From Prasinococcaceae sp. CCMP 1430 (taxonomy: Eukaryota > Plantae > Prasinodermophyta): DNA of 5,454 nt. The stretch lies in NCBI GenBank assembly GCA_013416795.1, contig RQSC01000579.1, forward strand, positions 39,992 to 45,445. The letters are read 5' to 3'. The translations under genes were made by a program, and so were the position numbers. Below the pieces are notes generated by a model, which was not told the origin of the DNA, ran no database searches, and saw nothing but the letters and a program-made list of their open reading frames with translations. This document shows, piece by piece, positions 1 to 5,454 of this stretch (position 1 is its first letter; each line of letters begins with the position of its first letter).

Positions 1-5
1 GGAGC

Positions 6-575
6 TTGCATGAGCAAAAAGAGCAGCTGTTTGGAGTTCCTGCTACTGTTGATCAGCTCTTTGAAGGCTTGAAGAGGCAATTTCAACCTATTGCACCCGA
101 GGCTACCGCTCGAGATCTATTGGTGCGCCTTCGTCAACGAGCAAGCGTTCAAGAGTATGTATCGCGCTTCAACGAGCTGGTGCTTCAATGTCCATCCATG
201 CACGAGTCGGAGATGATGGACAAGTTCAAGAGGGGACTCAAGCCAACTGTGGCCAAGGAAGTGGCGCTCAAGGACCCTACCAGTCTTGGAGAAATGATGG
301 CATTGGCAACAAGGGTCGACGCTGTGGAGTATAGTCAGAGGCAGTGGGGCAGCCACAACTTTGGAGGATATCGACACTTTGGATCTCAAGCGCCAAGCAC
401 GAGTGTTCAAGGTCCAGTACCCATGGAGTTGGGACTTGTGCAGTACCAGCGCAGGCAGCAGAATTTCAAGCCGAGAGGACCCTGCTATAATTGCGGCAAG
501 CTTGGACATCTGGCTCGAGACTGTCATGTGAAGGCGAAGCAACCTCAACAGCAGGAAAAAGGAGGACGCCAGTAA
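6..575 (+). CDS. gag: Gag, 5'-truncated by the window edge (copy 1): capsid C-terminal part and nucleocapsid
   Basis: [17 protein letters not shown] and FKRGLKP retrotransposon-gag motifs, PVPMELG linker, CCHC knuckle [14 protein letters not shown] (483-524), stop TAA 573-575. The TTG at 6 is not a real start, because the homologous sequence continues upstream in copy 2. Confidence 0.95.
483..524 (+). other. CCHC zinc knuckle of the Gag nucleocapsid
   Basis: C-X2-C-X4-H-X4-C: [14 protein letters not shown]. Confidence 0.97.
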
Positions 576-3500
576 GTCGTTCTGGGGTGTCTACTGGCGT
601 GAAGACGAGAACTCACAAGGAGGTTATCCCCAGGAGCCTGCCGAGAAGCAAAGGACGAGACGTTGACAAGCCTATCATCGTGGAAGGAGTGGTCGACGGC
701 AACAAGGCGAAGTGTATGGTCGACAGTGGCGCAAGTGCAAACTTTGTGCACAAGAAGCTGGTGAAAGAGTGGCGAATCCCTGTGCAGAAGCATTATGAGC
801 CTAAGGAGGCAATTTTGGCGAATGGGCAGAGACTCAAGTGTGGTGCACCTACGGAAGCTATTCACGTGGAAGTAGCGGGGCACCGGAGTAAGGAAGTTAT
901 GGAGCAGGCAGAGTTGGGTCACCATGAGGTGATATTGGGCCGACCATGGCTAAGGAAAGCCAACCCTCAAGTGCACTGGAGCACAGGACAAGTGAAAGTC
1001 CAAGGGCGTGATGGTCGAATGGAGACAGCGAAACAGGTGGAGGTAGATACGACCACAAGTAACTGTCTTCTGTCGAGCCTGCAAGTTAAGAAGCTATGCA
1101 GGGCGAATCAGGTGAAGGAGATGTACCTTGTTTCGGTGGCCCTGGCCAGGTCATCAGATGGAGCAAGCGTGAATCCTAACAGCCTGGGCGAATGTACATC
1201 GCCGGAGGAGCAAGTAGTGGTGTCTGATCCCCTTGCTCAGAAGGAGCAGAGCCCAACTGCTCAAGAGAAGAAGCCTGCTGAGATGCCTGCCCAAATTAAG
1301 GCGCTGTTGGAGGAGTTCAAGTGCGTGTTTCCTGAGGAGCTACCTGCAGGATTACCTCCACAGAGAGCTATGGAGCACAAGATTGAGTTGGAACCAGGGA
1401 GCAAGCCACCAGTGAGACCCGCCTATCGACAATCGTTTGCGGAGTTGGATGAGTTGAAGAAGCAGCTGACAGAGTTGTTGGAGAAGGGATTCATCCGACC
1501 CAGCGAGTCTCCATTTGCAGCGCCAGTCTTATTTGTGAAGAAGAAGGATGGGACTATGAGGATGTGTGTCGACTACCGGGCACTCAACAAGGTCACCATC
1601 AAGAACAGGTACCCACTTCCACGAGTGGACGAGTTGATTGACAGGCTTGTCGGGGCGAAGTATTTCTCGAAGATCGATTTGAGGAGTGGCTATCACCAGG
1701 TACGGATTGCGGAAGGAGACGTTCAGAAGACTGCTTTCAGGACTCGCTATGGTTTGTTCGAGTTCACAGTCATGCCTTTTGGATTGACTAATGCACCTGC
1801 TACATTCATGGGACTCATGAATAGTATCTTCAGACCCTACTTGGACCAGTTTGTGGTGGTATTTTTGGACGACATCCTGATCTATTCGAAGACCTTGGAA
1901 GAGCATGTGGAGCATCTGAGGAAGGTGTTGGAGGTCTTGAGAGATCAAAAGCTGTATGGGAAGATGAGCAAGTGCGACTTCTGTCTCAAGGAGGTCGAGT
2001 TTCTTGGACACATAGTGGGAGCTGAAGGAGTCAAGGTGGAGCAGAAGAAGGTGCAAGCAGTCAGAGATTGGCCGGTACCTGCTGATATTCATCAACTCAG
2101 GAGTTTCCTCGGCATGGCGAATTATTATCGACGTTTCATTGAAGGATTTGCCAAGGTGTGTGCACCGCTCACGGACATGTTGAAGAAGCAGGAGAAGTGG
2201 CTATGGGGTGACAAGGAGCAGCAAGCCTTTGAGAAGATTAAGGAGCTGTTGACACAGGCACCTGTGTTGGCAATTGCAAGTCCAGAGCTTCCTTTCACCA
2301 TCATCACGGACGCATCAAATTTCGCAGTGGGAGCCATTCTTCTCCAGGACCAGGGCAAAGGATTGCAGCCTGTGGCATATGAGAGCAGGAAGTTGAGTCC
2401 TGCTGAGCAAAACTATGCAGCACACGAGCGGGAGATGTTGGCTATTATCCAGGCTTTGAGGATTTGGCGATGTTATGTGGACGGCCGGAAGGTGTTCATC
2501 AAGACCGACCACAAGAGCTTGGAGAAGTTTATGACGCAGCCAACGTTGACACCAAGACAGGCAAGGTGGATGGAGTTTCTGCAACAGTTCGACCACAAGA
2601 TTGAGTACTTACCTGGGAAGATCAACCCTGCAGACGCTTTATCCAGGAGGTGTGACCTTGCAGCTGTCTCAGTCATCAAGGAGAATATGGACTTCAAGGA
2701 GAAGCTTCAGAGAGGTTATGAGGAGGACCCAGAGTTTGCTGATGGTGGAGCAGCTGAGTCCAACTCGAGTATGCAGAAGAAGGACGGCATATGGTATTAT
2801 GGTGATTCCAAGAGAGTGGTGGTACCTGACATCAAGGAGCTACGAGACTTACTACTTGCGGAGCATCATGACTGCTTATATGCTGGACACTTTGGAAGCG
2901 AGAAGACGGCAAGCGTGCTGAAGCGGGAATACTACTGGAGAAATATGGACAAGGACATCGAGGAGTGGATCAGGAGTTGCGATGCGTGCCAGAGAAACAA
3001 GACACCAAATCAAAAGAAGGGAGGTACATTGCAGCCCCTGCCTATTCCAGAGTATCCTTGGGAGCAGATTGCTATGGACTTCATCACATCGTTACCAGTC
3101 AGTGGTCAAGGGCACGATGCAGTATGGGTTGTGTCTGACAGACTCAGCAAGATGGCTCACTTCATTCCCATGAAGGAGACTTCTACGGCAGCAGATGTGG
3201 CACGGCTATTCTTTGATCATATTTTCAGGCTACATGGGTTGCCGAAGGTGATTGTTTCAGATCGGGATCCAAGGTTTACTAGCAACTTTTGGCGGTCATT
3301 GTTTACTTTGATGGGGACCAAGCTGAGTATGAGCACTTCCTATCACCCTCAGACAGATGGGCAGAGTGAGAGGCTCAACAGAACTCTGCAAGAGGTGCTC
3401 AGGAGTTTCACTATGGAAGACCCTTCAGAGTGGGACAAGAAGCTGCCAGGATTGGAGTTTGCCTACAACAACAGCATGCAGGGATCGACCAAGCAGTCAC

Positions 3501-4174
3501 CATTCGCTATGGTTTATGGGAGAGAAGTATATCATCCAGGGAACATCTTGTTGGAGAAGGCCAAGGAGACTCAGGTTCCTACTACACAAGCTTTTATGGA
3601 GCAGATGGCCAAGACTTGGGATATGGCGAAGACGTGTATTCGGAAGGCACAGGAAGAGCAGGTCAAGCATGCTAACAAGCACAGGAGGGAAGTGACATTC
3701 CATGTGGGCGACAAAGTACTCTTGTCCACAGAGAACCTACCTTTCACAGGCAAGAGGAAACTGCGGGCACGGTTTACAGGTCCCTTTGTAGTGCTCAAGC
3801 AGGTGAATCCAGTGGCCTACAAGTTGGAACTTCCTTCAGGCTGGCGTATCCATGATGTGTTCCATGTCAGTTGTCTGCGGCCATACGTTGACCCGAATGA
3901 AGGACATCCAGGACGACTACCTACACCGCCACCACCGGTCGAGATCGATGATGTATTGGAGTATGAAGTGGAGGCGATTGTCGGCGATCGACGAGTCAAG
4001 CGAGGTCAACGACTTGTTCAAGAGTATCTGGTCAAGTGGAAAGGCTACCATGCGGACGACAACACTTGGGAGCCAGAGGCCAACTTGACTCATTGTAAGA
4101 GTAAGTTGAGACGTTATCTGCAGAATGCGTCGAGGACGTCGCATCTTGAGGAGGGGGATGATGTAAGGTCATAG
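491..4174 (+). CDS. pol: Pol polyprotein (PR-RT-RNaseH-IN-chromodomain). The open frame runs from 491; it is probably entered by frameshift near 555-560 as a Gag-Pol fusion
   Basis: 1227 uninterrupted codons with all catalytic motifs present. The TTG at 491 is unlikely to be a true start. Confidence 0.97.
554..600 (+). promoter_or_regulatory. Putative -1 programmed ribosomal frameshift signal (slippery G GAA AAA, 5-nt spacer, 9-bp stem-loop)
   Basis: pol lies in the -1 frame relative to gag, and its first ATG (716) is inside the protease. G_GAA_AAA is at 554-560. ACGCCAGTA (566-574) is the exact reverse complement of TACTGGCGT (592-600). Confidence 0.7.
671..979 (+). other. Retropepsin aspartic protease domain
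   Basis: [10 protein letters not shown] (catalytic DSG at 722-730) and C-terminal ILGRPWL. Boundaries approximate. Confidence 0.93.
1382..2017 (+). other. Reverse transcriptase core
   Basis: [51 protein letters not shown] (FLDD at 1862-1873), FLGHIV. Boundaries approximate. Confidence 0.97.
2294..2647 (+). other. RNase H domain (Ty3/Gypsy type)
   Basis: [12 protein letters not shown] (D at 2309), SRKL..AEQNY...EREMLA, TDHKSL, RQARW, ADALSR. Confidence 0.95.
2813..3886 (+). other. Integrase: HHCC zinc-binding domain, DD(35)E core, GPY/F module
   Basis: H..YAGH....CDAC (2864-2989); D at 3077 (AMDF), D at 3260 (SDRD) and E at 3368 (SER), giving 35 residues between the second D and E; GPF at 3779-3787; HDVFHVSCL. 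Confidence 0.96.
3959..4117 (+). other. Chromodomain at the integrase C-terminus (canonical, group I type)
   Basis: EYEVEAIV...EYLVKWKGY...NTWEPEANL, with aromatic residues Y (3962), W (4037) and Y (4046). Confidence 0.95.
4148..4158 (+). other. Polypurine tract (plus-strand primer)
   Basis: GAGGAGGGGGA directly before TGATGTAAGG, at the end of pol. Confidence 0.9.
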
Positions 4175-4404
4175 GTTTATAAAGTGCATTTTTGAGTTTC
4201 ATGAAAGTATGTTTTGATTGTATAGTAGTGTAGAGTGCATTTTTGTGGTCATTTTGATATAAAGTTCATCGAATTTGGTCAAGTATTGAGAGAGTTATGG
4301 ATTTCCGAAGTTTAATTAGTTTTGAGGTCGGTTGACGACTGTCCTTAATTCGCGGTGAGCGCGACCGTCGGATTGACCGACAGCGTCGAGCGATCTGGCC
4401 CGTT

Positions 4405-4434
4405 AGAATGAACTCGAACCTTCACGTAAGTTCG
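4405..4434 (+). promoter_or_regulatory. Putative heat-shock element array (six in-phase pentamers, four perfect)
   Basis: aGAAt gAACt cGAAc cTTCa cGTAa gTTCg. Confidence 0.6.
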
Positions 4435-4468
4435 GCTGACGCGGAGTGCCGACTAGGTCGATTTACCT

Positions 4469-4478
4469 AGAAGTTTCG
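4469..4478 (+). promoter_or_regulatory. Two-unit HSE core
   Basis: aGAAg tTTCg. Confidence 0.4.
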
Positions 4479-4500
4479 GTTTAGCCTAGCGCGTCTAAGA

Positions 4501-4516
4501 TAGAATATTCTAGTAA
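4501..4516 (+). promoter_or_regulatory. HSE core within a 12-bp palindrome, plus an imperfect third unit
   Basis: TAGAATATTCTA palindrome (4501-4512); aGAAt aTTCt aGTAa. Confidence 0.5.
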
Positions 4517-4583
4517 TGTCGATGCATGTATGTGGACGTCAATTCGGCCCGACACGTCAGATTAGACTGATCTGGCTTACTCA

Positions 4584-4598
4584 CGAATATTCTGGAAG
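4584..4598 (+). promoter_or_regulatory. Perfect three-unit heat-shock element
   Basis: cGAAt aTTCt gGAAg matches nGAAn nTTCn nGAAn, ~70 bp upstream of the TATA box. Confidence 0.7.
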
Positions 4599-4666
4599 GG
4601 ACGATTTGACGAACACTTAGGAAAATCCGTAGCTTCCTCCTAGGGAGGAGCACTTAGGCAGAAAAT

Positions 4667-4703
4667 TATAAATAGGCATAACTTCTTTGTTTCTTATCAG
4701 TTT
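4667..4703 (+). promoter_or_regulatory. Putative LTR core promoter: TATA box and initiator
   Basis: TATAAATA at 4667-4674. TCAGTTT (4697-4703) fits YYANWYY, with A4699 lying 32 nt after the first T of the TATA box. Confidence 0.7.
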
Positions 4704-4964
4704 TCACTTCTGTAAATTTCTACGGGTTTGTAATGACAAGGCCTTTCATCCTACATCATTTGTGAGCAGTTTCTTGCCACTCAAAATGTCAAGTAATTTT
4801 CCTAAGCTTTCTTAGCAATATGCCGCTGCACTCTTGAGTATGATTGCAACTAGCTTTGTTCCTCGTGAGTCACTACGCTTCCACTAGGGCACTCTGCCCC
4901 TTTCACCCGTGAAGATGGAGGCACGGAGCAGACGGCACCACCTTTGTCAAGGGAGCAACAAGAG

Positions 4965-5454
4965 ATGCAGGCGATATCGAGGCAGACGGCAAACGCAATT
5001 GGAGGAGAAGTCTGCACATAGTTTCAACAAAATATGCGCCAGGAGGTGGAGAGAATGGTGCGAGTTGTTATGGGGAACGCCGCTTCGACGAGTTTGGCAC
5101 CTGCACCTGTTGTACCACCAATTCATGTTAACCCAGTGGTGCAACCAGTTATTCCACCCGCATCAGGAGTGCGTGCACCTAAGCCTGAAGTTTATACTGG
5201 AGAGCGTGGATCGCCGCCTGTTCATCAATGGATTTTTGGAGTGAAGAAGTTTATGGAGTATTCTGCGCTCACGCCCGACAGGCAAGTCGCCTTTGTCATA
5301 ACTTTGCTGCAGAAGAGTGCTGGAGCTTGGTATGAACGAGAAGAGCAGCTGTCTGGAGTTCCTGCTACTGTTGATCAGCTATTTGAAGGCTTGAAGAGGC
5401 AATTTCAACCTATTGCACCCGAGGCTACTGCTCGAGATCTATTGGTGCGCCTAC
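4965..5454 (+). CDS. gag: Gag N-terminal half (copy 2), 3'-truncated by the window. In-frame TAG at 5019-5021; next in-frame ATG at 5034
   Basis: The frame reads ...PAPVVPPIHVNPVVQPVIPPASGVRAPKPEVYTGERGSPPVHQWIFGVKKFMEY...[28 protein letters not shown] and overlaps the protein of 6..575. The true start (4915 with an indel, 4965 or 5034) is uncertain, and the copy may be a pseudogene. It is absent from the supplied ORF track, probably because the frame reaches the window edge without a stop. Confidence 0.88.
5322..5454 (+). repeat. Direct repeat of window positions 1-132 (gag segment)
   Basis: Hand alignment gives 8 substitutions and 1 indel over 133 positions (~93% identity); unit period 5321-5322 bp. 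Confidence 0.97.

Follow-up and report, generated by a model that had tools for sequence, protein, structure and literature searches.

A cluster of heat-shock-element-like motifs in the long terminal repeat of a Ty3/Gypsy chromovirus, a candidate heat-inducible retrotransposon

The ONSEN retrotransposon is bound by HSFA2 at a cluster of nGAAn units, and elements with three or four perfect units (3P and 4P) correlate with the heat response in several Copia families (PMC5059998). Gains of heat-shock elements (HSEs) among these families of the Brassicaceae were lineage-specific and recurrent (PMC5059998). The window considered here, ie the whole stretch of 5,454 nucleotides of contig RQSC01000579.1 that was analysed, contains most of one Ty3/Gypsy chromovirus, one long terminal repeat (LTR) and the beginning of a second copy, and a cluster of HSE-like motifs is found at 4405-4598 in the U3 (unique 3') region of that LTR. 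The cluster is read here, tentatively, as an enhancer that would respond to heat-shock factor (HSF). In having nGAAn clusters in the LTR, the element resembles ONSEN/ATCOPIA78, TERESTRA, COPIA37 and ROMANIAT5, Brassicaceae Copia families whose clusters lie upstream of the transcription start (PMC5059998). Those families, like the window, also show a mixture of strong (3P/4P) and weak (gap, step and two-unit 'proto') elements (PMC5059998). They differ in being Ty1/Copia elements that have no chromodomain, and in that HSFA2 binding and heat induction were established by experiment, whereas the evidence in the window is at the level of sequence and includes no 4P element.

Closer by superfamily are the LTR elements of the flatworm Macrostomum lignano, in which 6 of 137 families carry canonical HSEs and four, all Ty3/Mdg4, were induced more than 250-fold, the HSEs being necessary for the heat response (PMC12801592). 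The Ty3/Mdg4 families concerned (Mag, CsRN1 and Gmr1/Osvaldo clades) belong to the same superfamily as the element in the window, Ty3/Gypsy. One to four canonical HSEs per LTR are present upstream of the transcription start in the Macrostomum families, and were gained independently in distant lineages (PMC12801592). The original prediction had implied a first heat-responsive Gypsy counterpart of ONSEN; that place is already taken by the Ty3/Mdg4 families, whose LTR HSEs have been documented experimentally (PMC12801592). The base rate of HSEs is also similar, at approximately 4% of the Macrostomum families (PMC12801592) and approximately 5% of the 80 relatives described below. The Macrostomum families differ from the window in belonging to animal clades without chromodomains and in that heat induction and the necessity of the HSEs are experimental, whereas the chromovirus described here is known from its sequence and its nearest named relatives are of the green lineage.

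The MAGGY element of Magnaporthe is a Ty3/Gypsy element with a chromodomain. It is reported to be activated by heat shock (Ikeda et al. 2001, as cited in PMC3978060), and no statement of MAGGY responding via canonical HSEs was found in the literature. MAGGY differs in being fungal, and its likeness to the window comes from the literature only, since it was not a named match in the protein searches. PHRE1 and PHRE2, Ty3/Gypsy elements of a plant, Moso bamboo, have LTRs which were examined under heat stress and contain TGACG motifs, as the window does, but no heat-shock element is described in them (0 occurrences of the term in PMC8656106). Helitron1_CE of Caenorhabditis is a mobile element with HSEs tied to the HSF-1 response (PMC6927752, PMC12801592), but is a rolling-circle DNA transposon and not an LTR element. 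A limited literature search, which is not proof of absence, found no description of a chromovirus with canonical heat-shock elements in its LTR. With HSE-bearing LTRs already known in Ty1/Copia and Ty3/Mdg4, the LTR in the window is, on its motifs, a credible candidate addition.

The motif GAAnnTTC occurs at 4416, 4470, 4503 and 4585, within 180 bp, as had been noted in the original prediction. The single other copy in the window is at 2701, in pol. All four sites are in U3, 70-260 bp upstream of the predicted TATA box, TATAAATA, at 4667. The perfect nGAAn-nTTCn-nGAAn expected at 4584-4598 is present as nGAAnnTTCnnGAAn. The region 4405-4434 had been described as an array of six in-phase pentamers; the phasing stands, but only four of the units are perfect (GAA 4406, GAA 4416, TTC 4421 and TTC 4431), one (GTA 4426) has a single mismatch and one does not match. 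The same imperfect third unit, GTA, was confirmed in both the 4416 and the 4503 arrays. Under the classification used for ONSEN-type elements (PMC5059998), the four sites comprise one 3P, one gap-type and two 'proto' sites, with no 4P. Runs of at least three adjacent alternating nGAAn units were thus found in the LTR, namely the trimer at 4584-4598 and the gap-type array at 4405-4434 with its four perfect units. From the position of TATAAATA (4667-4674), transcription is predicted to start near 4695-4700, and the cluster sits upstream of TATAAATA where a promoter-proximal enhancer would be.

The likelihood of such a cluster arising by chance was estimated with dinucleotide-preserving shuffles of the LTR, 20000 of which were used for 4400-4600. 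The earlier figure of 0.15 GAAnnTTC per 600 bp holds if the four bases are equally frequent; the shuffle test that had been proposed for the count gave twice that value, 0.29 per LTR, with P(>=4) = 2e-4. Within 4400-4600 the shuffle mean was 0.077 sites, and 0/20000 shuffles reached four. A perfect trimer in the LTR had P = 0.012, an in-phase array with at least 4/6 perfect units had P = 0.002, and dimers of either polarity numbered six against 0.56 expected. When all 448 palindromic 3+gap+3 motifs were counted in the LTR, GAAnnTTC came top with four occurrences and every other motif occurred at most twice. The family-wise probability of any of the 448 reaching four was 0.046.

These figures bear directly on the possibility that the motifs are chance or neutral, partly multiplied by internal duplication in an A/T-leaning U3, and that the LTR promoter is not HSF-responsive. 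We consider this somewhat unlikely. It is favoured by the family-wise value of 0.046 for some palindromic motif in a shuffled LTR, by the post hoc choice of a famous motif, by the single canonical site and by the nine perfect trimers present in 380 kb of the coding DNA of relatives. The sites at 4416 and 4585 also have similar upstream flanks (P = 0.003) and may represent one event. The value of 0.046, however, comes mostly from A/T-only triplets and is approximately 0.014 for triplets containing G or C. The sites are, moreover, packed into 180 bp a short distance before the TATA box, further independent features are seen in the third-unit match and the in-phase array, and the 2 of 80 relatives which reach such a density are both obvious HSE arrays. 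Three sub-repeats of about 85 bp, each with one HSE, were considered as a general explanation and rejected. Nothing was found with Tandem Repeats Finder, MAFFT gave only a weak alignment and the shuffles supported similarity of the 4416/4585 flanks only, all other sub-repeat comparisons being non-significant. Internal duplication has therefore only a limited part in explaining the cluster. The cluster is real, and chance is an unlikely source of it, though not overwhelmingly so given the search space.

The sites at 4503 and 4585 share an identical core, GAATATTC, which is also a perfect P1BS. That motif, by definition GNATATNC, is the target of PHR factors in plants (PMC13044247, PMC2936532). 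It occurs twice in the LTR, compared to 0.13 expected (P = 0.01), and nowhere else in the window. If the two cores were binding sites for putative PHR1-type GARP/MYB-CC factors of the host, the LTR would answer phosphate or nutrient starvation and not heat, a reading with which the green-lineage origin of the nearest named relatives is in keeping. It is nevertheless very unlikely, as the other two GAAnnTTC sites (GAACCTTC and GAAGTTTC) are not P1BS, and neither the in-register third unit at 4595 nor the array at 4405-4434 would have any meaning for P1BS.

Besides the HSE-like sites, short motifs associated with stress show a modest enrichment in this part of the LTR. The U3 core at 4321-4625 has a CpG observed/expected ratio of 1.68 and a GC content of 0.50, whereas gag and pol are CpG-depleted (0.56-0.62, with pol at 0.56) and the rest of the LTR is A/T-rich. 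The high CpG content may reflect protection from methylation-driven decay, or selection for factor sites that contain CpG. TGACG/CGTCA is present five times (4333, 4437, 4537, 4555 and 4607) against 1.24 expected (P = 0.01), and RCCGAC three times against 0.43 expected (P = 0.007), the motifs lying within the U3 core (4327-4611). It is conceivable, though quite improbable, that the core is a composite multi-stress enhancer in which the HSE-like sites are one input beside RCCGAC sites like the dehydration-responsive element/C-repeat (DRE/CRT), TGACG and ACGT-core basic leucine zipper (bZIP) sites, and heat is not the principal trigger. Besides the two enrichments in the same 300 bp and the contrast in CpG content with pol, this is supported by the identity of CCGAC with the CRT/DRE core of a cold-responsive element (PMC5059998), by the DREB/CBF motifs that mark stress-activated maize transposons (PMC11656987) and by the TGACG motifs noted in the heat-tested Gypsy LTRs of PHRE1 and PHRE2 (PMC8656106). 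Each of these motifs has only 5-6 bases and weak significance, however, while the signal of GAAnnTTC is much the strongest (P = 2e-4) and no other motif forms higher-order arrays.

The probability that the cluster at 4405-4598 is an HSF-responsive enhancer in the U3 of the chromovirus LTR was put at roughly 0.45. It was not set higher because 2 of the 6 HSE-bearing Macrostomum families were not heat-induced, ie a canonical element is no guarantee of a heat response (PMC12801592). Other points also weigh against an HSF-responsive LTR. Of the four sites, three fall short of a canonical three-unit element, P is only 0.01-0.05 once the motif family has been corrected for, and the sites at 4416 and 4585 may both derive from a single internal duplication. 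The enrichment of U3 for TGACG, RCCGAC and GNATATNC means that heat is not a unique reading of the region. Finally, only one LTR is present in the window, and no close copy with which its cores and flanks could be compared was found in the collections searched.

If the LTR is HSF-responsive, heat or proteotoxic stress would cause trimers of the host HSF to bind the gap-type array at 4405-4434 and the canonical trimer at 4584-4598, with weaker, or cooperative, binding at the two-unit sites 4470 and 4503. Binding would then increase initiation at the TATA-driven promoter approximately 100 bp downstream, and the LTR-initiated transcript would be the genomic RNA, running through the leader, gag and pol. 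HSF binding, heat induction and any link to chromodomain targeting are steps which we infer. The motifs and their placement make the element a plausible candidate heat-inducible retrotransposon, and it is a reasonable thought that heat-triggered mobilisation could be coupled with chromodomain-guided insertion.

Relatives of the element were sought in a word-indexed protein search with the full pol product, and also with its C-terminal 330 residues in order to catch fragments on short contigs. The best protein relatives were 50-55% identical and comprised proteins of Closterium species, some from Asteraceae and Solanum, and many from metagenomes; among those with a name, the nearest belong to Closterium, a streptophyte alga, and are about 50% identical. 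Neither query retrieved a protein more than 55% identical to pol, and the exact pol product, with two possible starts, had no database match. Protein-pattern scans of viral, metagenome and bacterial/archaeal genome contigs gave no close relative, and an exact LTR 24-mer was not found in viral contigs. As an empirical background, 80 distant chromovirus loci (35-54% identity, 567 kb) were collected from metagenomes by an alignment-based scan. A blastn comparison of the LTR and leader with these loci gave two chance-level matches of 26-30 nt only, ie there is no LTR DNA in common.

The density of GAAnnTTC across the 80 loci was 0.36 per kb. The maximum number in any 200 bp was zero in 15 loci, one in 53, two in 10 and four in two. 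The two loci which equal the window, L039 and L064, have unmistakable HSE arrays, both much stronger than that of the window. In L039 (4856-4975) a TATA box is preceded, at 40-150 bp, by one array of four units, another of three and two dimers, and L064 (69-170) has three perfect trimers within 100 bp, 50-150 nt upstream of the gag ATG. So short a distance to the gag ATG leaves little room in L064 for R (repeat), U5 (unique 5') and a primer-binding site, and the placement of its trimers relative to the LTR is ambiguous. Of the less dense loci, L014 carries a perfect trimer in its LTR, 8 bp ahead of TATAAATA, and L066 has an identical perfect trimer in both LTRs, which differ at 11 other positions. 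The L066 LTRs (6177-7379) are 95.8% identical and its longest open pol stretch is 401 codons, ie the copy is decayed despite the identical HSE. Canonical HSEs in promoter-like positions were therefore found in about 4 of the 80 loci (5%). Perfect arrays are approximately three times denser in the non-coding DNA of the relatives (14 in 187 kb) than in their coding DNA (9 in 380 kb). In the non-coding DNA, GAA and TTC trimers were the commonest arrays of a triplet, its reverse complement and the triplet again among those containing G or C, with 10 and 6 occurrences, the next best having four.

The four HSE-bearing loci are only 38-51% identical in pol to each other and to the window, and the window's nearest relatives (L001, L002, L006, L009 and L045) have no such clusters. 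The pattern suggests that the clusters were gained independently several times and were not inherited, and as far as the motifs can indicate it fits HSE clusters having been gained recurrently among these relatives. A wider proposal is that chromodomain Ty3/Gypsy elements in the green lineage and other microbial eukaryotes have captured the heat-shock regulon repeatedly and convergently, with independent gains here and in L014, L039, L064 and L066, and with stress-timed transcription paired with a chromodomain-guided choice of insertion site. This generalisation we regard as unlikely. In L014 the integrase tail (4399-4854) consists of a chromodomain (Pfam Chromo, E 3e-8) and then a PHD finger (Pfam PHD, E 8e-13), which, judged by these domains, would be a double chromatin-reader.

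If the LTR does respond to HSF, HSE-driven activation, proven so far in Brassicaceae Copia and flatworm Ty3/Mdg4 elements, would extend to a chromovirus of a probably green-lineage host. Such an extension, with the parallel cases among the metagenomic relatives, would lend weight to a prediction already in print, that gains of this kind are to be expected repeatedly across the tree of life (PMC12801592). Sequence and expression data could then be used to examine, in a natural example, whether the timing of transcription by stress evolves jointly with insertion directed to heterochromatin. The present value of the observation is modest, as it is a motif-level prediction for a single LTR.

The coordinates of all features are given in the table. 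The element is a Ty3/Gypsy chromovirus, as originally predicted, with protease, reverse transcriptase, RNase H, integrase, SH3 and chromodomain all matched by Pfam. The order protease - reverse transcriptase - RNase H - integrase in one frame is that of Ty3/Gypsy, and the upstream gag piece, 5' of pol, has a capsid-like region and a CCHC zinc knuckle. There are zero stops, frameshifts or insertions in pol, and the same is true of both gag pieces. The description 'intact' is borne out in part, by these open frames; the window contains neither a complete copy nor a second LTR, and the sequence after the LTR is unlike the primer-binding site of relatives. The chromodomain matched the PDB sequences of CDYL, CBX1 and HP1 with E values of 6e-12 to 4e-10, and has aromatic residues at the CDYL-aligned positions. 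Chromodomains of this HP1/CDY class, termed 'group I', prevail in the elements of non-seed plants (review, PMC12786077). The gag and pol frames overlap by 85 nt (491-575), with pol in the -1 frame relative to gag, a normal retroelement layout; no canonical slippery heptamer was seen by eye in the overlap. No known RNA families or tRNAs were found in the window.

Features of the window. HSE = heat-shock element, LTR = long terminal repeat, ORF = open reading frame.
Feature	Coordinates	Strand	Basis and remarks
gag of upstream copy, 3' part	1..575 (open frame 6..575)	+	Pfam Retrotrans_gag, Ty3_capsid and zf-CCHC; ORF list; no in-frame stops
pol	491..4174	+	1227 codons, uninterrupted; ORF list, translation, Pfam domains
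Aspartic protease	680..955	+	Pfam gag-asp_proteas/Asp_protease_2, residues 64-155
Reverse transcriptase	1535..2017	+	Pfam RVT_1, E 9.9e-39, residues 349-509
RNase H	2204..2590	+	Pfam RT_RNaseH / RT_RNaseH_2, residues 572-700
Integrase (H2C2 zinc domain, catalytic core, Tf2-1-like SH3)	2834..3889	+	Pfam Integrase_H2C2, rve and SH3_Tf2-1, residues 782-1133
C-terminal chromodomain, HP1/CDY-like	3962..4123	+	Pfam Chromo, E 4e-18, residues 1158-1211, after SH3
Polypurine tract GAGGAGGGGGA	4148..4158	+	Read directly; abuts LTR start; purine-run-then-TG layout also in relatives L050, L071 and L057
LTR, 600 bp	4159..4758	+	Imperfect inverted termini TGATGTA...TACATCA
CpG-rich U3 core	4321..4625	unstranded	Holds the HSE-like cluster and TGACG, RCCGAC and ACGT motifs
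HSE-like array 1	4405..4434	unstranded	Six in-phase pentamers, gap-type; contains GAACCTTC at 4416
HSE-like site 2	4469..4478	unstranded	Two-unit GAAGTTTC only (proto-HSE); GAAnnTTC at 4470
HSE-like site 3	4502..4516	unstranded	GAATATTC (4503) and imperfect third unit GTA; also perfect P1BS GNATATNC
HSE 4	4584..4598	unstranded	Perfect three-unit nGAAnnTTCnnGAAn (3P type), 69 bp upstream of TATA box; GAATATTC core (4585) also fits P1BS
Predicted TATA box TATAAATA	4667..4674	+	Sequence prediction
Leader of downstream copy, 275 bases	4759..5033	+	Between LTR and gag start
gag start of downstream copy	5034..5454	+	ATG 5034; first 140 codons, open to window end

The boundaries given for the LTR are putative, being drawn from the one LTR in the window. 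Its termini resemble those of the relative L050 (TTGATATG...ACATCA), in which the purine tract is also similar, and its GC content is 0.42 compared to 0.51 in the coding DNA. The LTR serves as both the 3' LTR of the upstream copy and the 5' LTR of the downstream copy. The original prediction had placed the HSE-bearing LTR directly upstream of another copy, and the leader of 275 bases and the gag start (ATG 5034) that follow it agree with this. Bases 5323-5453 match bases 1-131 at 118/131 positions, with 37/42 codons identical, and the arrangement is internal region - LTR - internal region of two diverged copies. The primer-binding site of L050, L065 and L071 is found 2-7 nt after their LTRs. 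The sequence at the corresponding position in the window, 4759-4780, is unlike the site common to those three and has no TGG start; priming of the downstream copy may differ, or its primer-binding site may have decayed. An ORF at 4909..5244 was treated as spurious, being without a Pfam match and in a frame that differs from gag.

A direct-repeat pair was present in 34 of the 80 related metagenome contigs, many of the pairs being exact terminal overlaps of 106-183 nt. Contigs of 4.6-7.4 kb that end in exact overlaps of about 106-183 nt include L011, L019, L020, L025, L045, L048, L059, L062 and L076, among others. Such exact terminal overlaps are what an assembler typically leaves when it closes a cycle via one LTR, and the contigs can be mistaken for circular genomes. 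The overlap in the window is only 90% identical and is therefore not a simple k-mer closure; the tandem could still be a chimeric assembly of two family members.

Two further short motifs were observed in the LTR. TGTAA occurs twice (4711-4715 and 4729-4733), downstream of the predicted transcription start and before the LTR end, an interval in which no AATAAA was found. Many green algae use UGUAA as their main poly(A) signal (PMC1868727, PMC4025486), and the two copies hint weakly at a host of chlorophyte type. Between the last HSE and the TATA box, two copies of CACTTAGG (4614-4621 and 4651-4658) enclose a perfect palindrome, TCCTCC-TAG-GGAGGA (4635-4649), that may be another factor site.

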